A stretch of DNA of 64,000 nucleotides from Hyphochytrium catenoides (lineage: Eukaryota > Protista > Hyphochytriomycota). The first letter of the stretch is position 1. Every line of letters starts with the position of its first letter. A program made the position numbers and the translations under genes. Location: NCBI GenBank assembly GCA_900088475.1, contig FLMG01000265.1:1-64000 (forward strand). Reading direction: 5' to 3'. The notes beneath the pieces are model-generated. The model ran no database searches. It saw nothing but the letters and a program-made list of their open reading frames with translations, and was not told the DNA's origin. Shown here in pieces: positions 18,901-41,422 of this stretch.

Positions 18901-21900
18901 ATGCATCTTTCTTCCTGCAACTTTGCCTTTCTGCGCCAGCTCCCCCGGGACCATACGAGGAAAGCATATTGTGTTTGGTCCTCTTTCGTTCTTCTCTTGC
19001 CCATCAAGAAGGATGACAGGAAGGAGAGCGCTGCTTTGACGCGAAGACTCTGACATGTCGCTGTAAGCGAATGAACCTACGTATAGCAGATATGGCGTGA
19101 GGTCGGTAATACGAGGAACAAAGACCTTCGAACGATTCTAGCGTTTCCCAATTCAGCGGAACCACTTCGCTGTCTCTCTCTTTCTGCCAGACACACATAC
19201 ACAGTCTCTCACCCTCCCCAGTCTCTCTTTCTCTCCTGTATTCAAACGGTTTACCAATGGGATAACTCCTCGTCCTTCAAAAACTCCTAGAGAACCTACC
19301 TGGTCCTGTAAGGTGGTCAACTGCGCTCCGGTGGTTTCAGCGTTAACTTTTAGCTGGTGTAGCTCTTTGACATGTTCCTCTCGCATCGCCTCCAGTGCGG
19401 CTAGCTGCTTCTCCTTCCCAGCAGAGATTTCAAAGTTTTTCTTCCAATTTTCCTTTTCTTCTCGTTCCCATTCCAGCATTTGTCGCATCTCTTGTACGTC
19501 ACTCTCCATGGCCACTTTCTCCGCGTTCCACCTTTCAAAGCTCCGGCGCAGCCCTTCATCTAACAAGGTTTTGATTCTGTTTATGCGCATCATGACGCTT
19601 AAGCCCATGTCCTCTGTATGACCCTGTTCCATGAATGTTGTCTCGTTTGGCCGCTTCCTTTCACTGGAAGCCTCAAAAATCTGAGCTTCAATCCTTGCGT
19701 CTCCTGCCACTGCTCAACAAAGGGTGAAGGGAACAGATGGCCAAAGGAGATAAGCATCAGCACTAGTTCTATAGCTAGCAGTGCAGCAACGTAGGTTAAG
19801 GTCCGACGCAGTCTGGAGTAGGACGAACTGAACTTTATACAATCATTGGTTGACCGGAGCAATCAAAAGCCAGGAGAATCGACGGATTTACCTTCCTTGC
19901 TTTCCTCTCTCCCCCTGAGATCTCTGAGCTCTTGCTGCATCTGTTCTGCTTGCTGTGCTAAGGCTAGAAGCAAGCTCCGTAACTTTTGAAGTCTCTCCGG
20001 TAACTGACTCTGAAGACCACGCAGTCGCTCTGCCAAGTTCTCACCTTCTGCCCCTGACGGCCGACGAGAGCCAAGACCTGACGAAGGAGGAGGAGGAGAG
20101 GGTGCACAAGAAGGAATGGCGTCTCCACCTACTAAAGGCGTAGCTCTTGCCTTTTCGCTGCCGCCGAGAAAATTGTCCACAATGACCTCGATCTCAGCAG
20201 CAGCTCTTGCAAGATTTCCAAACTGAAAAGAATTGCAAGTGAGAGATGTGTGAGCCATGAGGATGCGTTCTGAAATTAGCATGGGCGACAGAGTCTTAAT
20301 AGTCAGTGGTCGGACTCACCATGTGTCCTGCCCTACGCTGACTCTCCCGTTTTCCCTCTTCTAGTTGCCTCCTTTGTTCAGCTTCTTGCTCCTCTTTGGC
20401 CTTCTGCGACTCTTCCAACTCTTTCAGTCTCAGTTTCCAATGCGCTTCTTCCTGTCTCCTCGCTGTGTCGCTTTCCTCATCCACTTTTCTCTGAGCCCTC
20501 AGGATTTGAAGGTCGCTTAGCGCCTGAAGTAGCTGCGCCTGGGTTGCTTCTGTCTCTTGCTGAAGTTTTGAGATCGAGGTCCTGTGTTCTTGCACCATGT
20601 TCGCCCTCTGCTCCTCCAACGTCTGCAGCTTGTCTAATATCTCCCGCTGCTCTGCTTTCAAGTTCTCCTGCTGCATCTCCTGGGTCTCTAGCTTTTGCGT
20701 TAGCTCCCGCTCCCTTTGGTCACTTTCATGAAGCTCTCTCTCCAACCTCTGCACGTTGTCAGACAAAAGGTTTCGACTTCTCTCTCCTTGCTTCTTGTCT
20801 TCCTGGACTGTCTGCATATTTGCCTCTAACTCATGCCGGAGCTTTTCCTTTGTGTTGACTTCCTCCCTTAGCTGACCTAAGGTTTCTTTGAGATCCTGGA
20901 GTTCTTTTTCCCTCGACTGCTGCCTTTGCTCGCTTTCCTGCTTTAGGGCGCTGAGCTCCTTGCATTTATCTTGGAGGGCCTTGCACTTTAGCAGAATATC
21001 CTTCAGTTTGCCAGTCAACTTTTTGTTCTCTGAAGGGGTGATGGTGATCAGAGCGAAACTTGGTTTAGTCTGAATATTGAAGAAGAGCGCGGAAGATAGG
21101 ACACACTTCAAGGCAAGCAAAGACATGCTGATGGTGGTAGGAGGCGTAGTCTGCAGACTGCCAAGCAAGGGCTACAGGCCAGGGGATTCAAATAATCCTC
21201 AAAGAGAAGTAGGTATCGGAACGTGGGAGAGCTGTCTCCTCTTACCCTCTGTCACCTCCCCCAGGCGCCGAGAAGAATGCCGGAGCTCCTCCTCTACAGC
21301 TTCTTTCTGTTGGTCCCGAGATCTTAGGACACCTTGGATCTGCGCGACTAAAGAAGTAGCTACCGTCGTGTCTTCTTTCTTCTCTCCTCCATTTGGTAAT
21401 AGTGCCCCTAGAATGTCCAGCACCTCAGACTTCTCAGACTCAACAAGTTGCTTTAATTGCGCTACTTGTTGGAGCTCTAACTCTATTCTCTCTCTTTTAG
21501 TGTTCGCCACATTCACATCGTTTTCTAACTCCTTTATCCTTGCTTGAGCATCTTGTGCTCCCATGTGGGCAGCGAGAAGCTTCTTTTCTAATTCTTCCAC
21601 TAGGGTGTGGCCCTGGTCTAGTTCCACTTTATATGCGGTCTCTCGCTCTTTCCATGCTTGCTTTTCACCAGCAAGTTCCCGCGTAGTCTCCTCTTTGGAA
21701 GCATGCTCACGCTTCAGCTCTTCCTCCGCCACTTCCTTTTGCCGTTGCACCTCTTGAAAGTTTGTTCTTTGTTCCATCGTCTGCTGTTGTGCTTGCTGGA
21801 GCTCAAGTAACAATCTGTCTCTCTCATTGGTCAAATCGTTAAGCCTCTGTTCCCATGCTTCTCTTTGGCTCCGACTACTGTCGCGTGCCTCTGTTAACTC

Positions 21901-24900
21901 CTTTTGAAGTATCTCGCGACCATCTTCCGCTTGTTGCAACCTTTCCCTCATATCTACCAATTCTCTCTCTCTTTCCATCTCTTTCAGCCTCATGGTCTCT
22001 GTGTCTCTTTCCCTCTCAGCCTCTTTGGTCTTCATCTCCCTAACTTGCATTTCTCTGCCTTTCTCCTTTTCCAGCTCCTCGGCTTCTCTTGATTTGGCCA
22101 AACTTTGAAGAGTGGTGTACTTCTGATGCAACAGTTTGAGCTTCTTCTGTCCTTCTTCCAACTTTCTGGTCACGACGGCATATTCTTCTTCTCTTTCCCT
22201 CCACTTTTCCACCGCTATCTCGCCTGCTTTCACTAGCTCATTTGTTGAGCTCTCATTGGCGAGTAGAGCCGGAAGAGACGGGGAAAATGACAAAAAGACT
22301 GGCGTAAGGGTGGTTGTAAGCCTGTTAAAGGCCTCGTTCTTATTCTTCAGCACGAGTTTCTCCGAAGCTTCATCCTCTTCCATTTTCCTTTGTTGATTTT
22401 TGAGCTCTTCCAATTCCTTTTGGAGCCGAGTTATTCTTCGCTCGTACTCTGCGGAAGCTTCCTTTGCCCTGATTGCGTCTTCATCTGCTTCCTTGCAGCG
22501 GCGGATCTGTTCTCCAGTCCTAGCTTGAAGTTGTACTCGCAAACTTGAGAGATCCTGGGTAAGCTCATCTATCTTCATATCCTGTTCCTGTCTCTGTTGG
22601 GTGAGCTGCTCGATATCACACCTCCACCGCAATTCGTCCTCTTTAGCCCTCGCAAGTTGTGTCTTCATATCTTCGGCTCCCTGAGCCAGGTTTTGCATCT
22701 CTTCTACATTCCTTTGCCAAGTAGCCCGATGTCTTTGACTCGTATGCCCTTGCTCATCCTTGAGACCCTCTCTTCTTTCCCTTCTGCTACTTTCGGCATC
22801 GGCCAGTGTGAAAGCTAGTTGCTCTTTGTACTCCTGTCCCTTCTTGTGAAGAATCTTCAACTTTGAACTAAGCTCGGCAAGCTTGTTTCTCAGCCGTTGG
22901 ACCTCATCTCCATCGCTGCTAACCTTTGTTGGAAGTGCTTCCCCTTCTGAACCTTGGGAGACCTTTGATCGATCCTGTTCCTGGGCTTCATGCTCTCCTT
23001 TCTGTGCTGATAGCTCCTGATGCCCTCGCCTTTTCAGGGCAAGAATTCGGTCCAGGAGCAAGTGCTTCTTCTGTTCTAGCTCGCTCAAATAACCTGCGTT
23101 AAGCCCAGGAAAGAACGACGTGAGTCTCTCGCAGCGTGACAGAGATTGATCTGTTATCACTCGCAATAACAAGAGATCTTACCTTCATCTGAAGTGGTTT
23201 GCTCAGCGACATTACCGATTTGCTCGCCTGCAGCATTGAGCAGCGTCACAAGCGTCGACAAGAAGTACCTAAATAGTCGTTGTTCTTTGCTTCCTTGCTC
23301 CTCATGCACGAGTTGGGGTAGAGTTATCGCTACCTCCTTGTCGCCTTCAGTTTTGCCCTTCTGGGAGGTTGTTCCTTTCTTTTGCAGAAGTTCCATGTTC
23401 TTTCTCTGCAGCGCTCGAAGCTTTCCAACAAGCTCTCCTATCTTCTTCTTCAGAGCTGACTCCGTCTCCGCCGACTTCTTAGCTAGGGCCTCGTACTTTA
23501 CTTGCAGCTCTTGTTCCTGTTCTCCCGTGGCTGAGTTCGTGACTCCGTATTCTGCTTTCGGTGGCTGTTTGTCTTTTTCCTGCAATCCTGATGCCAGTTC
23601 ACTGCTGGGCTCCGCTGCTCCTTGCCTCATTCCAGGCTCTCGGTGGCTGGGTTCCTCTCCCCCGTCCGTGCCTTCTCCTTTCCGTAGTCTCAACCGCAAT
23701 GCTTGCAATTCCTGCTTACTCAAGGATAACTCAGTATCTAGCGCTTTCTTCTCCTGTTGCGCCTTCCGTAGCTCCTCCTCTCTCAGGGTCCGCATGGCAT
23801 CCAGGTCTCGACACAGAGCAACATTCATGCTCTTGACCTTCTCAAGTTCGTCTTGAAGCGCAAAGGCTGGCTCCATCTTCTCCTGTTTCCTTCCTCTACC
23901 TAACCGCGCCGTCTCTTCGCCCATTGAGTTCAGCTCTCTCTCGCTCTCCTTGCTGAGACCGTCCACAGCAGCAGCTTCTCTCGTAAGACTATTCTCTCGC
24001 TCGTTGGCTCTTTCCGCGCTCCTTTCTGCCTCAGTTGTAGCATCATCGAGTGCAGTGCTCTTCCGAAGTCCTGCGGGGGGCGTGCGGGTATCTTGAAGGG
24101 ACAACAAAGCCTCCTCAGTACCCTGTTGTAGCTTTGCCAGCTTATCTGATTGCACTTTCAGCGGCTGTTCGCGTTCCATCAGTTCCCGCCGACCTTGTTC
24201 AAGAATCTTCGCTCTTTCTTCCACCTTGTCACGGTACTGGCGAAAGGTAAGCTCCAGCTCGTCTGATCGCAGCTTCTGTCTTTCGCTTTCTTCCTGTATC
24301 AGTTCTAGCCTCTCTTCCAAAGATTGTCGGGCAAATTCCGATTGCTTCATTTGCTCTTCCAAGAGCCCCGTCCTGTGTTCTTCTCCCTCTTGCTTAGCAA
24401 TCAAGCCTTGAAGGCGCTGTCGCAGCTCGTGCTCTTCCTTCCTCCACATAGCCTCAGCTTCCCGCCATGCGCTCTCCTTCCCTTCCAGTGTAGTTAGCGC
24501 AGAAGCAGCTGATGTACGAAGTTTCTCTTCACTTATCATCCAACTTCTCTCTTTTTCTCTGACCCTACTCTCCAGCTCTTGCTCTATTCTTTGGCGCTCA
24601 ATTGCGTCTTCCATGAGCTTCTGACTTGATTCCTGTGCGTCCACCTTGAGCTTGGCGATATCTCGCTGAAGTCCATCTCTCTCCTTTTTCAGCATTTGAA
24701 GAGAAGTCTGCCAATCTTCCTTCTCTGCATTAAAAGCAGCCAATAAAGCTTCATTATCGCGTAGTAGCATTTGATTTCGCTCTTGTGCATTCAAAAGCTC
24801 CTTCTCCGTCGCGTCCCTGGCAGCAGACGAGTCTTCAAGTGAAAGCCGTAGCCTTTCCACCTCTTCCGCCTGTCGATGCCGCTCGGCGCTTTTGACCTCT

Positions 24901-27322
24901 ATCGCGACGGCTGCTATCTGTGATTTCATGGCCTCTTCCTGCCTCTGCCGTTCTGCCTCTCCTTCTTGCAGCAAACACTCCGCTTTAGCGAGAGCGGACT
25001 TCAATGCTTCCTCTCTTTTTTCCCATGCTGCCTTTTCTTCTTCTAAGGATGAACTTGCAGACAGTGCTGATTGTAATCTCTGCTCCCCAGATTCCCTATC
25101 GTCTTCTCTTGCTCGCAAATCGTGACGCACGGATTCTAAGTTTGAGAGAAGGTCCTGTTCCCTCCTTTCCCAATCTTCTTGGCCCCGCGTGAGTGTCGAG
25201 ACTGCCGTTTGCAGAGCCGTCTCTAGCTCCCCTCTCTCTCTATTCCAAGCTGCTTCCTGAACTTGAAGCAATTTGAGCGCCGTTTGGGTGGCTTCGAGGG
25301 ACGATATCAGCGATTTCTCTCTTGCCACCCACTCAGACTGCTTCTCTTCCAGCGTGGTGAGAGCCAAGGAACCCTTCAGCATTATTTCGTCTTCCTTCGC
25401 TGCCCATTCTGCATCCTTCTCACGTAGTAAAGACAGCGCAGACTGAAGCTGTCCTTGGAGGGCTTCCTCCCTCCTTTCCCAGTCTACCTTAGATTCAGTG
25501 ATAGTGGAAAGTGCATCGTTGAGGGACATTAATAACTCCTGTTCCTTCTTCTTTCCCTGCTCTTCCTTTTCAGTAAGGCTGGAGATAGCCTGCTCTAGCC
25601 GTCGCTGATAATCAAGCTCTCGCTGTTCCCACTCCTTTTGTTGCATAGCCAGACTAGACTGCTCTGAAGTTGCCGCTGCAAGTGCAGACGCCTGTTCTTG
25701 CACTTTCTCCTTAAGCTCTGCTTCTATTTCCTTCGCTGCAAAATTGCTAGCCATGAGAGCTGCTTCGAGCTCTGCTTCTCTCCTCTTCCACTCCAACTCT
25801 CTGCCGCTTAGAAGAGATAGCGCCCCACTAGCTTCTGACCGAAGTACCTCTTCTCCCTTCTTGTACTCCTCCTCCTTCACTGCCAAGGAGGAAATGGCAG
25901 CATCTAGGGCACCTTGTAAAGTTTTCTCTACAACTTTGTGCTCCTGCTCTTGTCTACCGAGAGATGAAAGGGCGTCCTCTAAAGTAAACGCGAGCCTTTC
26001 ATCCTTTTCCTTCATTTGCTCCTCAGCTCTCCTCAGTCTGATTTGTAAGCTCTCAATTTCTGCCCTAAGGCTCTGTCCTCTTCTTCCCGAATCTTCGCAT
26101 AAAGCTCTCAGTTCTCTCTCCCTTTCTTTACCAGCCTGCTCCTGCTCCGACAACTTGAATTCAGTAGAAGAGTCCTTCGCCTGGTGCTCTTCCTCAAGTC
26201 TTTTTAGTTCAACCTCCTTGTCTTTCAAGGCCGAAAGTAGCAAAGCTATCTGAGCGTTCCGCTCTCCCTCAATTCTAGTCCATTCTTCAACTCTCACATC
26301 TCTGTCTCTTGACGAAGCCTTAAGGAGCTCCAGAGACCTTTGGAGCTCTGTTTCCCTTGCTTTGTTTCCATCTGCCTGCTGTTCCAGGACAGATATCGTT
26401 ACCCGCATATGTTCGAGCGACGACCGAAGTCGCGCTGTTTCCTCCTCTAGTTCTCTGCACTTGGCTTGTGCCTCTAATAGCGTTGCCTCGCGTCGTATCA
26501 ATTCTTCTTTCGAAGCTTGGACCTCACTATGGGACTTCTCAAGTGCCGAACTGAGTCGCGCTATCTCTGTCTTGAAGTTTTGTCCTTCATCGTTCCTCTT
26601 TTTTTCCTCCTCACGCCTTCTCTCTTCTTCGTCCTTCGCCGTTTTTTCTGCTGCTTGCGAAGTTGCCTGCAGGGCTTTGGCTTGACTTTGAAGACTTAGG
26701 AACTTTCCAGCAGCGTCCTTTAACCGAACCTTTAGTTGTTGATTCTCAGATTTCACATCTAGGAGCGCCTTCATACTCTGTTCGAGTTCGGACACTAGCA
26801 TTAGACAAGAGTAATTAGTTGATTAGATCCACGGGAAGCGCATTATGAGGTTCCTATCGGACCCCATCCCGCATTTAAAAGATTCTTACGGGTGGAAACC
26901 TGAGCCAGCCGGAAGACTGATGCCAGCTCGCCTTCTTTCTGTTGGCTGACACCGCTTTCGTCTGTGGCCTTCAGTAGAGTTCCTTGACCAGCCTCTTCTG
27001 AACAAAAAAAGAAGTGAGATGACGTCAATAAAGGGAGACAAATGTTGTGTTAGTCGAAGATGTGGAACTCCTGTGGACCGGGAGAACCCTTTCATCAAGA
27101 GAAGGTAGAGTACATGCTGGCTGAACTTAAAACGCGCTAACCTTTAAGCTTCTTATACTTTTCGTTGAGTCCGCTGTACTGAGCACTGAGCTCCTTTAGC
27201 GTTTCAGTCAACTTCTGATTCTCCGATCGTAAGTCATTCTCTGCAAAGAAAGATCGCAGCCATCAGACTCTGCTTCCCTAGCTTAAGATTACTGTCTCGC
27301 TGTGGAGCTTAGCATCTCTCAA

Positions 27323-27363
<41 letters not shown>

Positions 27364-28488
27364 CTCTCTCTCTCTCACTCCCTCTCTCTCTCTCTCTTGC
27401 TTCCTACGCGTGGACTCTTGCTTCCCACGCGTGGACTCTTGCTTCCCGTTCTCTCTGTCGTAAGATAAAGACTAGAGTATATTGACTAGTAGCAATTTTT
27501 TCCTTCTCTGACCCGAAGCCAGACTTCCCATCTGCACCACAGGCAGCCAAGGTACCTGCAGCTTCTGCTTTATCAACCGAAGAAAGTCTTTGGTTCTCCT
27601 CCTTGAGAAAGGTCATCGTCGCCTGCAAGTCCGATAGCTGCCAATGGGCTCGTAAGGACACTTGGAGTGCACCTCATTAGCAGTTCGTCTTCCTTGTCCT
27701 TCAATCCTACCTTCTTAGCAAACTGGCCCTCCATAGTCACTTTTTCTGACTGTCTCTTCGCCAAAAGCTCCGACTGCTTCTTGGTCTCCGCCTTAAGGTT
27801 CTCGCAGTTATTCCTCCATATCGAAAGCTCTGTCTGCAAATTGACAAAGGCGTCGACCTTCTGCTTGAGCAACGCCTTAGTTGTCTCATTGTCCATCAGC
27901 ACTGAATTCAGGCGTTGGACAAAATCTTCAGTTAGTGCGCGTTTGTCTGCATCCTGTTGTTCTAAGCGCTTCTGAAGTTGAGCATTAGCGGCCTTCAAGG
28001 TCTCCACCTCCCTATCATGGCTCTCTAGGCGCGCTGTCAGCGTATCGAGAAAGATATATGAGAGTTGGAAGAGTGAGAACCGGAAAAACGAGTTGCATTC
28101 TTCTGTCCAACATGCTATTTGTACCTAAGCTCTCAGAACTTCCCGGGGCCGATTCGCCGCTTGTCTTGATAGCTTTCTCTTTTGTAAGGGAACAAGAACC
28201 GGTCGCACGTGTTAAAAGGTCTACTTACTGCTCTGCTCTGACTTCTTAGGTGGCAATACCTTGTCGACTCTTTATCTCTTCCAGCTCATCTTCCAGCTGC
28301 TTGATCCGTATTTTCTGCTTCTTGAGGTGGACGACTAGCTGCTCCTTAGGGATGGAGGCTAGCCTCTGCGTAAGGACAAAGTGTTAGAGTGAAGGTCATT
28401 GCATCAATGAGTGATCTCCCTCCTTCTCAGACACATTTTCAATACTTCGAACCTGAGAAGCAGCGTCTCCTCCGTCTGCGCTCGCCAT
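15966..28488 (-). CDS. Giant coiled-coil golgin with C-terminal GRIP domain (GCC185-like), roughly 3,000 aa
   Basis: N-terminus MASADGGDAASQ|RLASIPKEQLVVHLKKQ resembles the GCC185 start (L..LPKEDL....KKQ). Long E/K/Q/L heptad ORFs (1214, 657, 290 aa) join in phase at GT-AG junctions. C-terminal GRIP YLKHVVYKYVQAQDAGEHLALLPVISQILKFS|PEE...GWTNSLW*. Confidence 0.8.
27316..27397. repeat. (CT)n microsatellite in a golgin intron, followed by a 21-bp tandem duplication (~27405-27447)
   Basis: Direct inspection. Confidence 0.9.
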
Positions 28489-28942: not shown

Positions 28943-31672
28943 ATGAGATATCTATCTTCCAGCTCCTTCTTCGGCTTATTGTTCTGGCCCGGCCTTGCTT
29001 GGGCGGCGAATAAGTCTCAGTATGCCAATGTTCAGGAGGTTGACGTGAAAGAAAGCTTGAAGCTCCTAACTTCCGTGCCACTGAAGTCTTTTGAACTGAA
29101 GTATGGCAGTTCCGCTGGCAGGCGCCATATTGGCTTCCAGGCTGAGGATGTTCAGGACAAGATTCCCGGCGGTGTCACTGAGATTCCTAGAGCTCATCTT
29201 CAGAACCCACTGCGGCCGCATAGAGGGGAGTCTACCCCTTCGGAGGGTGCGAGTGGGCCGTCGACCATGCACGTGGTGGATAATGGCCTTGTTTTATGGC
29301 ATACCGTTGGGGCGACTCAAGCGTTGAGCCAGCAGCATGAGGACATGTAAGCAGCTCACCTCATGGATGTCATCCATGAGAGCTTCACTAATACCGACCA
29401 TTAATCAAACTGAAGGCTCAATGATACTATGCGACTCAGTGCCGCTGTTCAGAAGCACACTGGTCAGATCCAGACAATATTTGGAGACCTAGAGATTCTG
29501 ACCACCACCACTGCCAACATAACCCGTCAGCTAACAGAGCAAGGCCAGTCTGCTGAAGAGAGAAGAAGGCTTATCGCCGAGCGCAGTGGACAGGTTCGTG
29601 AACCATGCTCATTCCTAACCTCCGCTGTGCTAACTCTGCTGGACTCTATAGCTCGCCCTATTCTCGGACTCAGGGGACTTTATAGGAGACCATTCTCTCA
29701 CGTATGATAATGGGACCTTGACCGTCTCCCATCTGTCCGGACACGTTGTAGAAGGAAACATTGATTATCAGCACCACCGAATGGCAAACGTTAACATCAG
29801 CGGCGGTACCCTCAGTGGCATTTCTACCCTTCGCTCAGACACCCTGTTTCTGTCAGGAAAGAGCTTCAGTTCGGGCGGCGTACTGACACTGGCTTCAGAT
29901 CAATCGGTCGTGATGGATAAAGAGTTCACTTTCAGCAATGGGACGCTCAAAACGCCGTATATTGCCTTCTCAGAGTTACACTCCAGCGTTGATTGCAAAG
30001 ATCACGAACTGCACGATGTGCGCCTCAGACGAGGAAGTGTAAAAGGTTTCTCTTCGGTAGAAACTGAGCAGCTACTCCTTCCATTGCAGATTACGGACTC
30101 CATCCCTGTCATCACTAAAGATGGCAAGCTCGGCACCTTTTCAGACCTTCAGTATCGCAATGGCACTCTGACTACTCAGACCGCTCAACTCAACAAGCTC
30201 TTAGGTGACATTGAGAGCGGCGAAGCGACTCTGAGAGCGCCGAAGATAATAGGGGGAAGCCTAAGCGGTGTTGCTAGGGTAGACACCAAGGCTTTGACAC
30301 TCTCCGACTTCAGGGCTGGGGGGGTTCTGCTTATCGGAAAAGCTGGCGCAGTATCTACAGAATCTGAGCTTCAATTTCAGAATCGCACTCTAATTGTCCC
30401 CCAGGCGGCCATCAAGCAACTTGCAGGAGACTTGGACGCAGCAGGGCGCGTCATACTTGGACCTATTGTTCGAGGTGGATCAATAGAAGAGGCTGCAGGC
30501 GTCGCCGCCAGGAAGTTTACTCTATTAGGCGGTGAGAAAGGGGAAGGTGGGCTAATATTTTTAGGCAAGAATGGGGAAATGCAAGTGTCGCCAGACATTC
30601 AGATCAAAGAGGATGGGCTAATTAGTGCTCCGTCACTGGCACTTAAGAGACTAGAGGCGCCTCTTGACTTTAACAGTCAGCCCCTATCCAACGTGAACAT
30701 AGTGGGCGAATCTAAAGCAGAGCTTATGCTTTTGCGCGTCAACCAGCTTTCGGTAGCATCTCTCCGTGATGGAGAGGTGCTATTTGGAGTTGATGCCGGG
30801 GACGGAACCACCCAGACGGGCTCACACAAGTCGCTACGTTTCATCGATGGGATCCTTGAAGCGCCAAAGCTATCTGGACATCACGTGACCGGGCCGGTCG
30901 AGTTTGAAGGAAATTTGCTGGAGAATGCGGCCATACGAGGAGGATCAGCCGCCGGTCTCACTTCGCTGTCCACTGATGCTCTTTCGATAACTTCTTCGGC
31001 AGCTCAACCGGGACGTATCTCCTTCTTTGACGAACGGCGAGAGCTGACAGCTTCTGAGCTGCTAGTCTTTAATGACGCTACTCTAAGTGTGCCAAATTTG
31101 AAAGTCCGCGAGGTACAATCATCAGTAGACTTCAAGAACAACCGGCTGACAAATGTCAATATTGTCAATGGCAAAGTGACTGCAAGTTCGCTGACTTCCA
31201 CGGTCCTGGCGGTGGAAGATGATGTAAATATAGGAGGTTCCCTTATGGTGCGCGGCTCCGTTATGGGCTCGGGGCCGTACACTGACACCTCCGATGGCCG
31301 ATTTAAAGAGAACATTGAAGGTCTCGAATCCCCGCTGGAAAAGTTGCTTGAGCTTCGTGGCGTAAGTGCTTGAATCTATATCTACGCACTGCTATCACTC
31401 ACCGTTCCTGTCTCTCGACCTAGGTTACTTATGACTGGAAACCGTCTACAGGCCTGCTCCGTACCGCGCATGGAGCAAGGCGGCAGCTGGGGTTTGTTGC
31501 TCAAGAGGTCGAGAAGCACATTCCAGAAGTGGTTTACACGGATGAAAAGGGGCACAAGTCAATAGCTTACGCCAGAATAGTCCCAGTACTTGTTGAAGGT
31601 ATTAAGGAGCTGCAGCTGCAGATCGACGCAATGAAACGAGAACTGGATACTCTAAAGTCTTCAATGCGGTAA
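28943..31672 (+). CDS. Secreted beta-repeat fibre protein with N-terminal degenerate and C-terminal intact peptidase S74 (intramolecular chaperone autoprocessing) domains; 846 aa, 4 exons
   Basis: Exons 28943-29346, 29416-29593, 29652-31361 and 31424-31672 splice in frame. Signal-like MRYLSSSSFFGLLFWPGLAWA. N-terminal ICA-like NVQEVD...HIGFQAEDVQDKIPGGV...VVDNGLVLWHTVGATQAL. ~75-aa repeats. C-terminal TSDGRFKENI...LRG|VTYDWK...LGFVAQEVEKHIPEVV...IAYARIVPVLVEGIKEL plus coiled coil. Confidence 0.88.
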
Positions 31673-34651: not shown

Positions 34652-35803
34652 CTAAGCAGCTTCAGAAGGCCTGCCGCCAGGCCCAGGGTCGCCTTGATCG
34701 TCTATCGAAGAGGAGGCGTCTCCAGATAACCTTCTTCTCTTAGGATGAACAGGCCATCGCGTGATGCCGTTCTTCCGACATATTTTACGCAGACCCGAGA
34801 GTGAGAGGTTATAGTACTCGGCGACCTGCTCCATGGGCTTTCCAAACTGGGACTCGAGCTCTTCTCTAGTTATCTTCTTGACTACCTGTCGGCCCTGCCA
34901 GTGCGGCCACCGCTTGATGCCGTTTTTCCTACAGATACGTTTTAATAAATACATGGGGATCCCGAACTCCTTGGCTACTTCGGGCAGCGGCTTGTGAAAG
35001 TGCTTTCGGAGATCATCATACGAGATATCTTGCACCAGCTGACCTCCTCTTTGGCCTTTCCATTGCTGGTCGGAACTGCCAGCTGCGGCGGAAGAAGTCC
35101 TATGTAAGGTATGATGACTTTCCGTCACGACGCTCTCATCGCCCTCGCTTTCTTCCAACTCCTCATCCTCATCATCTGGAATATCCACCCCCGAGGGAGA
35201 TGAAGTGCTACTTCTCTGCCGTTTTTTTAGCATGCTAGACCAGGGTTTTATAGCAAGCTCTCGAACGTCGCTAGACGGCTGAGGAAGCGCTTGGTTGGGC
35301 GAGGTTTTTTTGTCATGATGAGTCCCTCCGCGCGACTGCTCGTCTCCTCTCGCGTTGCGCGACTCATCTGGGGGCTCTGAAGATAGAAGCGCTGATATCC
35401 GCATAAGGTCAACGGACCTTCGTCCGGGCTCACTGCCTGCAACGTCAGTTTCCTCAATCTTTCCAGCAACAGCTGCATCCTCCGTCCTAGACCGAGGAGG
35501 ACATGATAATCTTGACCTTTGCCATGGAGGCTGGAGCACAATCCTCGGAAGTCCAGGGATCTTATCGGTTACCACTGCACCAAGCCTAGATGCGGCTGCC
35601 ATAGGAGACGTGGAGGTTGAAGATGCAGAGCACGTGTCTTCAGAAGGTTCATCCTCCTCCAGCTTTGAACCGCTAGAAGACTTGTATCCACCTATTGTCA
35701 CATGCTCCTGTTGCGCTGCTATCGATATGCCCATACTCCCTTCATCCCTTTTACTCATGCTGACAAGTCGCTGTGCCTCGTCATCCTTCATAGCGCGGCT
35801 CAT
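34652..35803 (-). CDS. RWP-RK transcription factor with two tandem RWP-RK domains
   Basis: ISYDDLRKHFHKPLPEVAKEFGIPMYLLKRICRKNGIKRWPHWQ and ITREELESQFGKPMEQVAEYYNLSLSGLRKICRKNGITRWPVHPKRRR lie in one uninterrupted ORF. First ATG is at 35803; an upstream exon is possible. Confidence 0.9.
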   Translation of the reverse strand: MSRAMKDDEAQRLVSMSKRDEGSMGISIAAQQEHVTIGGYKSSSGSKLEEDEPSEDTCSASSTSTSPMAAASRLGAVVTDKIPGLPRIVLQPPWQRSRLSCPPRSRTEDAAVAGKIEETDVAGSEPGRRSVDLMRISALLSSEPPDESRNARGDEQSRGGTHHDKKTSPNQALPQPSSDVRELAIKPWSSMLKKRQRSSTSSPSGVDIPDDEDEELEESEGDESVVTESHHTLHRTSSAAAGSSDQQWKGQRGGQLVQDISYDDLRKHFHKPLPEVAKEFGIPMYLLKRICRKNGIKRWPHWQGRQVVKKITREELESQFGKPMEQVAEYYNLSLSGLRKICRKNGITRWPVHPKRRRLSGDASSSIDDQGDPGPGGRPSEAA

Positions 35804-37547
35804 AATGGTCCGGCATGACAACTACGCTGTCTCGTCCTACACACGTTGGGCATTTGCGCAAGACATCTTTCTTTAGTGCAGATGCCCACTATTGGCGATA
35901 GAATAGCCGCCTCACCCGCCCAGCTGGGCCCTCCAATCGTCAGAATGACATTGAACTACTGAAGCCAAGTGAGAGAAGCTACTCCAAAGTTCGTCTTGCC
36001 GATCCTTCTCTCAATATTTCTACCGTCCATCAAAGGATCTCTTGAGGTCTGATTTTTTCTCTGTCCTTCTACTACTACGTCTTTCTCCGAGTACATTCCC
36101 GCCCGCCCAGGAGAGTATGGAGCAGCTTCTGGTGAGCTCACCCTGTCATGTACAACCACCCGCCCTTCTCGCGCAGCTTCGCAGCTTTTAGTAAGGCTGT
36201 TGGATGAAGAGTACTCTTTTTCTTGGGGTTGGCACCATGTTTTCCGCTTGTTCTGTCCGCGTCGTTCCTTCTCATAGTAACTTCCCTGTTGTCGTTCAAG
36301 TGGCCTCTTTTGCTCTCTGTCTTCGAGCTTGTTCTACTCACTTCCCCTTCTATGGTCTCTCTCCTTGGTCACTGCCCCACTAAGGTACAAAGCGACAAGA
36401 CAGCAGAAAATGTTGGGAGAGGGAAGGGTGGACAGATAGATCGTCCAAAGATATGACTGTGTGCGAGGAGGAAGGGAAGACAGGACAAAGCGAGGAGGTG
36501 GAGAGACGGACAGAGGGTAGAGAAAGGCGGGAGGAAGGGAGAAAGATGGTTTGAGAGCGAGCGCGAGAGAAACGGCTAGAGAAAGATGTCAAGCCTCCTC
36601 CATAGAGTCACAGGGCGGGAAGAAAAAGTGTAGCAAAGAGCCGTGGAAGGTTTTGATCTCTCTATCTCCCTCCTCCTCCTCCTCCCTGGTCCGTCGTCTC
36701 TCCCACATCAAGCTCCGACGTAAACTTTGTCAAGTGCAAGAAAAGAGGGGGCCAAAGGAGGAGAGTCATGGAGAAATTTTTACCTTGAACTGTGCCTTTT
36801 AGCGCTATATAAAAACCACAATATTCTTCTCTGTCTCCGTATCTCTCCCGAGATGATGGATGTAGTTAACAGTAATCTGTCTCGTACAGAGCATATCTCT
36901 ACCTCTTCCTTGGGCCTAACTTGTTTGGGTTTGCCGCTCGAAAAGGGCGCATTTGGTGTAAATTAGTTCCTTTAATTGACTTCAAATAGGTAAATGGTCC
37001 TCGTCTTCCATCATTAATCTTTCCCACGTGTAATAAGAGACTATTGCCTCTTACTGCCTAACCTCAGATATTCGTTCTTGCTGTTGACAAAGATGACCTA
37101 TAGACTCTGCTATTCTTATTACTCTTGGGCTCTATTATGGGCCTAAGACAGAGTACTGTAGAGGTTGACCTGAAGGGAACAGCATGCTGGTTCCAAGCTA
37201 CAGTACAGCTGAAGGAGATGATGAAGGACAGGGGGAGAGCGTCCAAACCTCGGTCATTGGACGCACCAGCGAAGATTGGACAAGGCCATAACTTTGCATC
37301 TTAGGGAAGTGACGCGACAAGAAACATTGCTTCAGTTGGTAACTTTACTGAAACCTTCCGTAACCGGCCCTCCAGTCTATAGCTTGAAACGTTTCGAATA
37401 ACCTATTCTTGCAGGTTTAGGGCTTGGCTAGCTGTATTACTGAACCCAAGGATGAAAGAAATTTCTACGATGGGTGGGGATGGAAGGAAGCAGAGGAGAG
37501 AAGAGCAAGCCCAGGACCAAAGAGACACCAAGAGGAATGGCTGCGGG

Positions 37548-39035: not shown

Positions 39036-41422
39036 CTATTCCACATTGAGGCCGAGCATAGAAATATCATCCCTCTTGGTCCGCTCCCTGTGCTTTGCTC
39101 CTTCCTCCTCCTCAACGGTGCTACTAGACTCATGATGGAGATCTTCCAGCTCTCTATCAGCCACCTGCTTGTCTTTGCCTCCTTTCCCTGGCGACTCTCC
39201 TTGCTTTTTCCTTGAAGCCCGACGACCACCACCATCACGCCATGCCTGCAGTTGTACCAAAAGTCCTTCGTCTGTCTGAAGTTGAGATCTTACTAGGGGT
39301 TGACCAGTTACTGGACAACGGTTTCCATACTTTTTAAACCACTGCTCGACGGCAGACCTCTCAAAGACCTACGCCACCAGCCCAAGAAGAAGTGATGTTA
39401 GATAGACCATATGGAGGTGCATAGACGTAGAATAGAACTTATGAATAGAACTTATGAAGTATCTTCAGCCCGATGCAGTGCTTCACTATCGTGGAATTCG
39501 TTAGAGAGACCAACAAAGATTGAAATAAAGGTTGACTGCAGGTGAGCGTACGAATCGTGTTTGTCGAAGACATCGTCGGCAATAGACCAAAACCTAAAGG
39601 ACATAAAAGCAGGACGGTGCTCACTTACGTGGCCAAAGGGGCTTCGCACTGGATCTTGGAGCAATTTTTGCGTTAGATCACACTTAAGCTCATCCGGTAC
39701 CTCGTCCTGATCCGCTCTAGTCCCACCAGTTTCTTCGTTGTTGCGCTTTGAGGCCCTACTCCGATTGGTGCTTCTCTTATTGAGGTTGCTCACTGTTGGG
39801 TCAGAGTAATGAGAACCCTTAAGTCCTGGCCTTTTCTTCTTTTGGTTCAGGTTGGGAAGATCTCCCAGTAGCTTATACTTTTCTTTGGTAGCTATGAATG
39901 CAGGCTCGGATTTCTCCTCTTCCTTCATGAGTTCAATGATCTTTGGCTCGGCTTTGTGAGCCTCTCTGTCTCTGTTGGTCTCCTCGTCCAAGGTACGGTC
40001 AGTCACACCCTCAAATTCTGCTTGGTCAACCTGAGTCCTAAAGACTGCGTTATGTAGGGTTTCCACCGTGCCATCCGCTTGTGGTTGGGGAGTCTGTGGA
40101 TCCGACCATTCTTCCGCTTGGCCGCCCATAGCTGGCAAAAGGACAGTGTACACAGCCTGGCTGCGACAGTAGTCGATGGCCTTGTAACCCTCTTTGTCCT
40201 TCTTCATAGGATCTACACCCGCTTCTAATAACATCTGAGGATGATTCATCAAGTATATCGTTAGATTATTCAATTTAGACAACCAGGACGTAGGACAGAG
40301 TGTAACTTTCCAACCTTGACAATGCCCGGGTGATTTGCCTCTACAGCTTCATGGAGGCAAGTCCAGCCCTCCTCGTTCACTGCTTGAATATCGGCTCCCA
40401 AGTCTATCAGCTTCCGAACGGTATGCTCATGTCTGAAGCGGCACTAACAGAGGAACAACATATAGTGAATGGAATGAAGAACAATGAGGTTGAATGACAA
40501 TGTGGGCATACACTCTCAGCCAGTGGCGTTTGGCCAGGATAGGGGCAAAAGTTTGAAGCGGGACAGATGTGATTAAGTTCCGCTCCCTTTTGGACGAGTG
40601 CGGCTGCGATCTCCGTGAACCCTCTGTGCGCAGCTTCATGGAGTGGAGTCCAACCAAAGGAGTTCGTAGCGTTTGGATTGGCACCAGCGTCTAGAAGTCC
40701 TAACGCTAAGGGCTGGAGCCCATACGCAACTGGAGCCAGTGATTGAGTGTCAACAGTGACGGGACATGCAGGACGAGAAGTACTAAGAAAAAGTCTTCTA
40801 CCTGCCATGTGGAGCGGCGTCCATCCTCCGGCCCATTCTCCAGGGCCCCGAATAGTTTGGTGGTCAATCTTCATATGCTGCTCCTTCATGGCTTCCAGAA
40901 TTGTTAGCCCTGCCGCGATGGTGACATCACTGTGGCAGCACGCATGCAAGGGAATCCATCCATCGATATTGGGAACATCCAGCTTGGATTTATCCAGCAT
41001 GAGTGGAGGATAGCCGTCGACATCTAAAACCAGCTGATGATCTTTGGGTATTGTCGTAGTGTTTACCGGTAACACATCTTCACTTTGCTCTGTGTCCTCT
41101 CCAGCCGCCTGTCGGTGTACCTGTGAAACACGCCGAATGATGATGCCGTGCTCCGTGGGAATCGCTTCTGTAAGCACTTGGTCGTCCTCCTTAGAGGACC
41201 GATCCTCCTCGTCTGGAGCTGCAAAATCTTTGATGGTGTAAACATCTGTGAATAGCAATATTAACAAAGTATGTCGCAACAGGAACGCCCGCGGCGTAAA
41301 CCCTTACACGGTGGTCTGAATAAAAGGGGATGAAGCTGTTGCTCCAAAGCTTGCGAAAGAAAGAAGGCACACATAAGCATTTCGCCAGCCGTAGCGGCTT
41401 GGACGGACATGCCGCCACCCAT
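39036..41422 (-). CDS. Ankyrin-repeat U-box E3 ubiquitin ligase; multi-exon
   Basis: Ankyrin motifs GWIPLHACC, GWTPLHMA, GWTPLHEAAHRG, GQTPLAE, GWTCLHEA. U-box VPDELKCDLTQKLLQDPVRSPFGH|VFERSAVEQWFKKYGNRCPVTGQPL. The start MGGGMS is tentative. Confidence 0.85.

Follow-up and report, generated by a model that had tools for sequence, protein, structure and literature searches.

A single gene of the protist Hyphochytrium catenoides, located in a 64,000-nt stretch of contig FLMG01000265.1 (hereafter, the window), encodes a predicted protein in which a beta-rich repeat stalk is bracketed by two domains of the Peptidase_S74/ICA fold, of which the C-terminal one carries the Ser-Lys dyad of the self-cleaving type and the N-terminal one lacks it (Table 1). 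We propose, with moderate confidence, that this is a nuclear gene for a secreted homotrimeric fibre, whose C-terminal ICA domain (C-ICA) would cleave itself off and whose N-terminal ICA domain (N-ICA) would remain in place as a permanent clamp.

Table 1. Coordinates of the fibre gene and of its predicted features within the window.
Feature	Position	Strand	Remarks
Whole gene, start to stop codon	28943..31672	+	4 exons, 846 aa
Exons	28943-29346, 29416-29593, 29652-31361, 31424-31672	+	
Signal-peptide-like leader, aa 1-21	28943..29005	+	Predicted cleavage AWA↓A, rule-based reading
N-terminal non-catalytic ICA (Peptidase_S74-like), aa 22-134	29006..29346	+	Pfam, hhalign and structure matches
Pro/Ser/Gly-rich loop in N-ICA, aa 94-105	29222..29257	+	pLDDT <50, model residues 73-84
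Intron 1	29347..29415	+	69 nt, GTAAGC..AG, phase 2
Exon 2, helical neck, aa 135-194	29416..29593	+	Predicted helix
Intron 2	29594..29651	+	58 nt, GTTCGT..AG, phase 0, two CTAAC branch-like motifs
Seven ~75-aa beta-rich repeats, aa 196-726	29655..31247	+	In-register alignment
Repeat starts	29655, 29883, 30105, 30327, 30561, 30792, 31020		
C-terminal Peptidase_S74/ICA, first part, end of exon 3	31290..31361	+	Pfam profile positions 1-25
Ser741 codon	31290..31292	+	Pfam profile position 1; invariant Ser in alignment A4
Lys746 codon	31305..31307	+	Predicted general base of Ser-Lys dyad
Intron 3	31362..31423	+	62 nt, GTAAGT..AG, phase 0, interrupts S74 domain
C-terminal ICA, second part, aa 765-846	31424..31669	+	Pfam E 7.8e-8

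Two ICA domains in one protein

Both ends of the protein match the Pfam profile Peptidase_S74 (PF13884; curated cut-off, 22 bits), a check that the earlier note, made from the letters alone, had called for: aa 29-75 of the N-ICA correspond to profile positions 8-54 (E 1.1e-5, 26 bits), and exon 4 alone corresponds to positions 26-58 (32.9 bits). The C-terminal domain was scored per exon half, with the end of exon 3 yielding 14.7 bits, and intron 3 falls exactly between profile positions 25 and 26, such that the two half-matches are contiguous. The domain is thus complete (profile positions 1-58) and opens, as had been read at the outset, with S-D-G-R-F-K and the Ser codon at 31290. Ser741 and Lys746 of this motif correspond to S1 and K6, both invariant in alignment A4, and S-D-x-R-x-K is invariant across the viral and eukaryotic relatives of the C-ICA. 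Ser741 is the predicted nucleophile and would become the new N-terminus of the released chaperone, the predicted scissile bond being Thr740-Ser741; by analogy with phage tail fibres and MYRF, the C-ICA should cut itself off. The protein ends in a helix (aa ~815-846, from 31574) with a perfect heptad pattern (score 8/8), and exon 4 has matches at the very C-terminal end of many PHROG tail-fibre families, down to E 5.8e-20.

The N-terminal domain is a true ICA fold and no peptidase. Comparison of the N-ICA family with canonical C-ICAs by hhalign gave a probability of 95% (E 2.3e-8), and the Pfam profile MYRF_ICA matched weakly at aa 111-130. The best PDB matches of the AF2 model of the domain (pLDDT 73) are all ICA structures (7dc3, 3gud, 3gw6 and 4uw8), headed in Foldseek by the MyRF ICA (7dc3; E 1e-3, probability 1.00), and VIA gave Z of 4.2-5.1 to the same four structures over model residues 5-113; these structural matches are modest (TM ~0.43, Z ~5). 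The alignment to 3gw6 begins at residue 912, right behind the cleavage Ser911. The last helix of the domain extends into exon 2, and its Pro/Ser/Gly-rich loop is the longest insert at that position in alignment A1. The ICA-like domain previously suspected at this end is therefore borne out by the Pfam, hhalign and PDB matches, whereas its reading as a second self-cleaving chaperone is contradicted by the absence of the dyad: the Pfam match begins at profile position 8, the dyad-equivalent positions read A22-N23-K24...A28, and the Ser-Lys pair is missing from all 13 N-ICA sequences in the alignment. Direct BLASTP aligned nothing between the N- and C-terminal domains, which rules out a recent internal duplication, and no other ICA domain was found in the window.

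Helical neck and repeat stalk

The helix that follows the N-ICA gave a weak heptad signal in a crude test, such that of the two coiled coils initially suggested, the C-terminal one was recovered and this one is only a predicted helix. Compared with an ATAD3-type linker profile, exon 2 lines up with the coiled coil that lies behind the ICA in ATAD3-like proteins, the match being non-significant (E 0.021, probability 2%). The region downstream is beta-rich, with an abundance of Gly, Ser and Leu, and the approximately seven repeats foreseen there proved to be seven units that align in register, with identities of 12-32% and the consensus L.F.NGTL..P.L....L.G..DF....L.NV.I.GGS.

Neither exon 3 nor the repeat profile gave a meaningful sequence match in the PDB, and the Pfam scan of the individual repeats was equally blank. 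Exon 3 matched none of the viral contigs searched, and neither exon 3 nor its junction region (490-570) retrieved anything in the word-index protein search; the protein-search blanks constitute weak evidence because the index missed even L002, the related metagenomic contig described below. The single-sequence, single-chain AF2 model of the stalk was unusable (pLDDT 34), and we assume a fibre fold or trimeric beta-helix from the context.

Leader and probable secretion

Judging from its sequence, the 846-aa product is probably secreted. The signal peptide claimed in the earlier note was recovered by rule-based reading: the leader, MRYLSSSSFFGLLFWPGLAWA followed by A, comprises a positive n-region, a short hydrophobic core of ~13 residues and an A-x-A site. 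The strongest hydrophobic window of the protein coincides with this N-terminus, its mean hydrophobicity of 1.14 over 19 residues being lower than usual TM values, and the hydrophobicity scan of all 846 aa detected no later hydrophobic or TM-like segment. The protein contains eight N-x-S/T sequons, half of which (4/8) lie within the conserved NGT/NRT motif of the repeats. As for other destinations, plastid targeting is unlikely, Ala and no aromatic residue following the predicted cleavage site (our own reading of the sequence), and so is a GPI anchor, the C-terminus being an amphipathic helix with no hydrophobic tail.

The presence of only one cysteine in the entire protein is unusual for a secreted eukaryotic protein and counts against secretion. 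Together with the nature of the nearest N-ICA relatives, which cap ATAD3-like proteins, it would suit a protein in which the N-terminal hydrophobic stretch is a membrane or organelle anchor, a part that it may also play in the ATAD3-like relatives, and the fibre serves as an intracellular tether. Canonical ATAD3 is a mitochondrial membrane protein and, for this reason, the leader in the N-ICA family might not signify secretion in every member. Against an anchor speak the shortness of the core and the cleavage site behind it, the hydrophobicity below that of usual TM segments, the sequons, including those repeated along the stalk, and the fact that, to our knowledge, all characterised S74 fibres function outside the cytosol. 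We regard an intracellular tether as unlikely, although it survives best among the alternatives to a secreted fibre.

Relatives of the two domains and genomic setting

A single-sequence query of 1.84 billion proteins retrieved 12 relatives of the N-ICA, in every one of which the domain is located near the N-terminus, behind a hydrophobic leader. The only relatives detectable among proteins are the caps that adjoin the leader in stramenopile ATAD3-like AAA proteins (P0012; P0013 from Chrysoparadoxa australica; L006), which are 27-38% identical to exon 1. Like the fibre protein, these combine a leader, a dyad-less ICA and a helical segment, but beyond this point they carry an ATAD3_N coiled coil, a TM segment and an AAA ATPase, where the fibre protein has its repeat stalk and cleaving-type S74; no exon of the fibre gene matches an ATAD3_N or AAA domain in Pfam. 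Similarly, the word-index search with region 25-135 of P0012 recovered two ATAD3-like proteins only, and metagenome contigs searched with the six-sequence N-ICA alignment yielded just two short ATAD3-type loci. The N-ICA tree is star-shaped and groups the fibre-type caps neither together nor apart.

The relatives of the C-ICA include viral ones. Exon 4 shares 53% identity with the terminal part of a fibre ORF of 1386 aa from a giant-virus MAG (L008), and the fibres of giant viruses and polinton-like viruses resemble the product of this gene in being large and modular and in carrying a C-terminal S74 domain. S74 fibres occur commonly among the polinton-like viruses and giant viruses that infect protists (PMC12220804, PMC13659346), and giant-virus insertions occur in pseudofungal genomes (PMC5795050), all of which would be compatible with a structural gene that belongs to an integrated giant virus or polinton-like virus and whose fibre decorates virions rather than the cell. 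However, the gene is not set among the structural genes of a virus or provirus; its neighbours are cellular (a long coiled-coil protein, an RWP-RK factor, and ankyrin and U-box ORFs), its GC content of 51% is close to that of the window (49%), and it contains three spliceosomal introns and a signal-peptide-like leader. Moreover, the N-ICA alignment found no relative in 2.9 million viral contigs, the viral fibres that we fetched have a C-terminal ICA alone, with no N-terminal ICA and with a different stalk, and the stalk of the fibre gene has no viral match. We consider an integrated viral gene of this kind quite unlikely. The initial description of the product as a domesticated virus-type fibre is supported by the C-ICA, which is like the fibre ends of giant viruses and phages, but not by the stalk, which lacks viral, Pfam and PDB matches alike; as to the taxonomic distribution, for which a comparison with phages and giant viruses had been suggested, the C-ICA has phage and giant-virus relatives, and those found for the N-ICA are cellular.

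Conservation of the architecture and integrity of the gene model

At the level of predicted genes, the succession of leader, N-ICA, stalk and C-terminal S74 is conserved in a second eukaryote. The metagenomic eukaryotic contig L002 (JGI 3300045138; 71% GC) carries, adjoining a UGGT gene, an unannotated gene with the order leader, N-ICA, linker, intron, NGTL unit, stalk and C-terminal S74, as in the fibre gene. Its N-ICA, 32% identical to that of the fibre protein, lies directly upstream of the fibre part, on the same strand and in frame across a 126-nt GT-AG intron; its single NGTL unit matches the first fibre repeat (E 9e-9), and the junction G-P-Y-T-D-x-S-D-x-R-x-K is shared at 47% identity (E 2e-9). 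The two proteins differ in the stalk: whereas the fibre gene has seven NGTL-type repeats, the one NGTL unit of L002 gives way to a bactofilin-like beta-helix of ~600 aa that is interrupted by low-complexity stretches of acidic and basic character. L002 also differs in the spacer of ~30 aa between leader and N-ICA and in the number of cysteines (15 versus one). The literature search found no paper on a double-ICA protein and, to that extent, the statement in the earlier note that no characterised protein is known to have this architecture stands; in the sequence data it is not unique, given that L002 shares the order.

The three spliceosomal introns perceived in the initial reading are GT-AG introns, and their removal gives a predicted CDS of 2541 nt with no internal stop codon. 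If intron 1 is left unspliced, the frame hits a stop at 29348-29350, and exon 2, if intron 2 is not spliced, runs on to a stop at 29707. Combined with the residence of the other N-ICA relatives in a different protein family, these stops could be taken to indicate two genes, one for a small secreted ICA protein (exons 1-2) and a separate one for the fibre (exons 3-4). On the other hand, the introns, all of them short and canonical, are compatible in phase, the frame of exon 3 starts precisely at the acceptor of intron 2, the TAG of which is its upstream stop, and the first in-frame Met of exon 3 is aa 238, with no leader there. Furthermore, in the independent L002 the N-ICA is joined in frame to an NGTL/stalk/S74 fibre; because the order of parts is the same, the architecture is conserved, and it is very likely that exons 1-2 are part of the fibre gene, so that a division into two genes is very unlikely. 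Least probable of all is a silent or decaying gene, intact-looking yet functionless, for which the lack of close relatives in word-index protein searches might be adduced, but which agrees poorly with 846 codons spread over four exons without stop or frameshift, with the retention of the catalytic dyad and conserved ICA positions, and with the architecture shared with L002.

A proposed model of fibre assembly

We infer that the product of this gene enters the secretory pathway and most likely forms a homotrimer, with ICA folds holding both ends. The C-ICA would nucleate the trimeric folding of the stalk, as in phage tail fibres and MYRF, and would then cut the Thr740-Ser741 bond, upon which a fragment of ~12 kDa would depart. 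The N-ICA would stay attached to the fibre after folding because it lacks the dyad. It begins 0-3 residues past the predicted signal-peptidase site, a spacing that is not conserved, with spacers of 15-30 residues in L002 and the ATAD3-like proteins; in the fibre protein, the predicted cut would place the N-terminus of the domain 0-3 residues from the usual start of a released ICA. The mature protein would thus begin with a free-looking ICA trimer, the terminal helix of which would lead into the helical neck and on to the seven-repeat stalk. Such a cap might act as a permanent trimerisation and registration clamp, preventing the out-of-register pairing of seven similar repeats.

That the dyad-less N-ICA is a portable docking module, rather than a clamp alone, strikes us as improbable. 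Given that the domain caps both an anchorless fibre and, in the same lineage, membrane-bound ATAD3-like proteins, mixed or stacked ICA trimers could tether secreted fibres to a membrane protein, an arrangement that would be the cellular equivalent of the N-terminal adaptor by which phage fibres are held in the baseplate. Alternatively, the N-ICA could serve to attach the fibre to some larger secreted assembly, for example the hairs of the tinsel flagellum, the defining feature of the stramenopiles. If, as we favour, the N-ICA is a clamp on a secreted fibre, eukaryotes would have converted the form in which a viral chaperone is released into a lasting module for oligomerisation and transferred it from gene to gene.

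Comparison with known systems

In phage tail fibres and tailspikes, such as endosialidase K1F/endoNF (3gw6), the GA-1 neck appendage (3gud) and the T5 L-shaped tail fibre pb1 (4uw8), a C-terminal S74 domain with S-D-x-R-x-K follows a beta-rich stalk and is succeeded by a terminal helix, and the same arrangement is seen in the fibre gene. Unlike its phage counterparts, however, the fibre gene is nuclear and intron-containing, has a signal-peptide-like leader and lacks a virion context; no phage fibre matches its stalk in sequence, and where phage fibres have an N-terminal particle-binding adaptor, it has the non-catalytic ICA. Stramenopile mastigoneme proteins of the Ocm/Sig/Mas type contain cysteine-rich EGF-like repeats, from which the fibre protein departs with its lone Cys and no Pfam EGF match.

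A cellular parallel in mechanism would be MYRF, a eukaryotic protein in which a phage-type ICA brings about trimerisation and self-cleavage in the ER (PMC8326128, PMC3742443). The fibre protein does not belong to this family: it has neither the Ndt80-type DNA-binding domain nor the TM segment of MYRF, and Pfam finds S74/ICA only. Furthermore, the ICA of MYRF (7dc3) is internal and single, whereas the fibre protein has one terminal ICA of the cleaving type and one N-terminal, non-cleaving ICA. ICA domains have been known to assist folding transiently and then to remove themselves, from the rear end in viral fibres and from an internal position in MYRF; the new element here is the occurrence of the fold twice in one cellular protein and in two states, one copy being of the canonical self-cleaving type and the other dyad-less, located at the predicted mature N-terminus and common to an unrelated family of AAA ATPases. 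The combination of a cleaving and a non-cleaving ICA in one chain would, if the inference holds, amount to a natural experiment on how this fold sets trimer register.

Gene structure and domain layout

The fibre gene (window 28943-31672, forward strand) reads as a single four-exon gene, as the earlier note had proposed. Its three GT-AG introns contain CTAAC/CTAAT-like branch motifs and have compatible phases (2, 0, 0), and splicing yields an open 2541-nt coding sequence of 846 codons with no internal stops. The frame of exon 3 begins precisely at its acceptor, the TAG of which is the upstream stop; the GC content of the gene (51%) agrees with that of the window (49%). Intron 3 is validated by the Pfam Peptidase_S74 profile, because positions 1-25 lie at the end of exon 3 and positions 26-58 at the start of exon 4, contiguous across the splice.

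Coordinates of the fibre gene, its neighbours and related loci
Feature	Location	Strand	Details
Exon 1	window 28943-29346	+	
Exon 2	window 29416-29593	+	
Exon 3	window 29652-31361	+	
Exon 4	window 31424-31672	+	
Introns 1, 2, 3		+	69, 58, 62 nt; all GT-AG; donors GTAAGC, GTTCGT, GTAAGT
Coiled-coil ORF chain	window 20296-28007	-	290, 657, 1214, 144 aa; Glu/Lys/Leu-rich; no Pfam match; upstream of fibre gene
RWP-RK ORF	window 34652-35818	-	E 5e-32; directly downstream, convergent with fibre gene
Adjacent ankyrin and partial U-box ORFs	window 39452-41279	-	ankyrin E about 4e-12
Double-ICA fibre gene	L002 4035-7697	+	contig ends within S74 domain
Intron of the L002 gene	L002 4706-4831	+	126 nt; GT-AG
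N-ICA fragment P0003	L005 490-948	+	AT-rich; 1-kb contig
Complete ATAD3-like protein	L006 28-2085	+	685 aa
Fibre ORF, giant-virus MAG	L008 32-4192	+	1386 aa; Gly-rich ORF next

The signal peptide recognized earlier is borne out as a signal-peptide-like leader (aa 1-21, MRYLSSSSFFGLLFWPGLAWA), in which an n/h/c layout and an A-W-A/A site can be read, and a hydrophobicity scan of the 846-aa protein found no further hydrophobic segment beyond it. Exon 2 encodes a predicted helical neck (aa 135-194). The two coiled coils that had been claimed fared differently: the helix at the end of the C-terminal S74 domain has a perfect heptad pattern, whereas a crude heptad test did not support a strong coiled coil in the neck. 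The stalk (aa 196-726) does consist of seven repeats of ~75 aa, which align in register at 12%-32% pairwise identity, with the consensus L.F.NGTL..P.L....L.G..DF....L.NV.I.GGS and enrichment in Leu, Gly, Ser and Val. Of the eight N-x-S/T sequons, four fall on the conserved NGT/NRT site of the repeat, a site that the metagenome contig L002 keeps too (FANGTL), and Cys309 is the lone cysteine of this predicted secreted protein. No stalk relatives were detected among the viral contigs, in PDB or Pfam, or by a word-index protein search, a blank that carries little weight; language-model features grouped the stalk only loosely with S74-ended viral fibres.

The motif SDGRFK (Ser codon 31290, Lys codon 31305) opens a complete S74 domain from aa 741, again as claimed. 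The product of exon 4 matches 31 PHROG families, almost all tail-fibre families, at their extreme C-termini (best E 5.8e-20), and shares 53% identity with the last ~60 residues of a fibre ORF on L008, a contig of a giant-virus MAG. Identity to three other viral contigs is 30%-43%.

An N-terminal chaperone domain without the dyad

The assignment of an intramolecular chaperone (ICA)-like domain to the N-terminus (N-ICA, aa 22-134) is corroborated at the levels of sequence, profile and structure. The domain scores 26 bits against Pfam Peptidase_S74 (E 1.1e-5; curated cut-off, 22 bits), although the match begins no earlier than profile position 8. On the helix that follows lies a weak MYRF_ICA match, and the C-terminal end of a PHROG tail-fibre family matches the same span as the domain. 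In hhalign, a profile of 13 N-domain relatives pairs its columns 21-112 with columns 13-95 of the canonical C-terminal ICA profile (95% probability, E 2.3e-8). Canonical positions 1-12, which hold S-D-x-R-x-K, have no conserved equivalent in the N-domain family, and the Ser/Lys dyad is present in none of the 13 aligned sequences. The best PDB matches of an AF2 model built from this alignment (pLDDT 73) are exclusively ICA structures, headed by that of MyRF (7dc3; Foldseek E 1e-3, probability 1.00) and followed by 3gud, 3gw6 and 4uw8. VIA-align gave Z 4.2-5.1 for these four over model residues 5-113, with endosialidase 3gw6 aligned from residue 912, right behind its cleavage Ser911; such modest scores are the expectation for a single chain of an intertwined trimer. 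A recent duplication of one domain into the other is rejected, as BLASTP between the N and C domains finds no alignment.

Pfam, hhalign and VIA independently place the equivalent of the catalytic Ser at aa 22-25, 0-3 residues past the predicted signal-peptidase site, so that the mature N-terminus would coincide with the start of a released ICA. Because the cap relatives have spacers of 15-30 residues, this coincidence is not conserved and is given no weight.

Relatives of the cap and a second double-ICA fibre

Since the claim of a unique architecture depends on a lack of relatives, exon 1 was used as a single-sequence query in an exhaustive HMMER search of 1.84 billion representative proteins. 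Twelve matched (E 1e-8 to 1e-3), most with the cap near the N-terminus after a hydrophobic leader; given that the query was not a profile, the family probably has more members. The majority of the matches are ATAD3-like AAA proteins, in which a leader and ICA precede an ATAD3_N coiled coil, TM segment and AAA domain, including the complete example on L006, another on L007 and P0013 from the ochrophyte Chrysoparadoxa australica. P0012 and contig L004 likewise combine an N-terminal hydrophobic leader and a dyad-less ICA with an ATAD3-like AAA protein. Exon 2 is collinear with the beginning of the coiled coil in ATAD3-type proteins, albeit not significantly, and the tree of cap domains is unresolved. 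P0003, an N-ICA fragment on a contig that ends after 1 kb, shares RH[IV]GF..EDV and [FY]ELK with the window protein, neither variant being found in ATAD3-type caps, and may be a fibre-type orthologue.

The exception among the mostly ATAD3-like matches is P0006, on L002 (7.7 kb, 71% GC), which adjoins a eukaryotic UGGT gene. Downstream of the P0006 ORF (leader, N-ICA and linker) and in frame with it lies an ORF of 980 codons, and a phase-compatible intron takes out the intervening stop, leaving at least 1179 aa open. The downstream part opens with a single NGTL unit (E 9e-9 against the first repeat of the window protein), continues as a long bactofilin-like beta-helix and terminates in G-P-Y-T-D-S-S-D-R-R-L-K plus S74 (Pfam E 1.9e-15), with 47% identity between the two proteins at the stalk/S74 junction. 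Poly-Glu/Gly and Lys-rich low-complexity inserts interrupt the beta-helix, and the same metagenome holds another N-ICA, P0007. The order of parts is thus identical in two unrelated genomes, in each of which one canonical splice joins cap to fibre. This agreement is the main argument for assigning exons 1-2 to the fibre gene and for regarding the double-ICA layout as a conserved, though rare, architecture.

Host gene or virus

Among polinton-like viruses infecting protists, S74-ended fibres are reported to be widespread (PMC12220804); a giant virus infecting a stramenopile alga has them as well (PMC13659346). The N-terminal ICA is absent from the viral fibre proteins compared (L008 and the three other contigs), and the cap alignment has no match in the viral contigs. 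The minus-strand coiled-coil ORFs upstream, probably a single giant gene, produce the strong strand skew seen between 20 and 28 kb, where AT skew reaches -0.35; the ankyrin and U-box ORFs are possibly exons of one gene, Myb-CC and SPX genes are also among the neighbours, and the 64-kb window holds no second ICA-bearing locus. Judged from sequence, the neighbourhood is cellular and the fibre gene belongs to the host; its C-terminal chaperone is part of a pool common to the host and eukaryotic viruses.

Proposed maturation and comparison with known systems

ICA trimerization, stalk templating, self-cleavage and release are described by Schwarzer (2007) and Schulz (2010), as cited in PMC12220804 and PMC8326128, and the MYRF ICA in PMC3742443. 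By analogy, the C-terminal ICA would trimerize three chains, template stalk folding, cut the Thr740-Ser741 bond by its Ser-Lys dyad and dissociate. The N-terminal ICA, unable to cut, would remain attached as a trimeric cap whose terminal helix leads into the neck. Entering the ER first, the cap could lock the three chains in register ahead of synthesis of the C-terminal chaperone, a role proposed because the stalk consists of seven similar repeats. The predicted product is a trimer of about 3 x 720 aa that has no anchor and is N-glycosylated (eight sequons, four in the repeat motif); wall fibre, adhesin, flagellar-hair part and virus decoy are candidate roles.

A full-text literature search turned up no paper dealing with S74 fibres as cellular proteins of stramenopiles, with an ICA at the N-terminus or lacking the dyad, or with ATAD3-ICA fusions. 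The component parts are already known, and the protein is therefore of a known kind; what is undescribed is the double-ICA layout and a dead ICA cap common to a fibre and an AAA ATPase.
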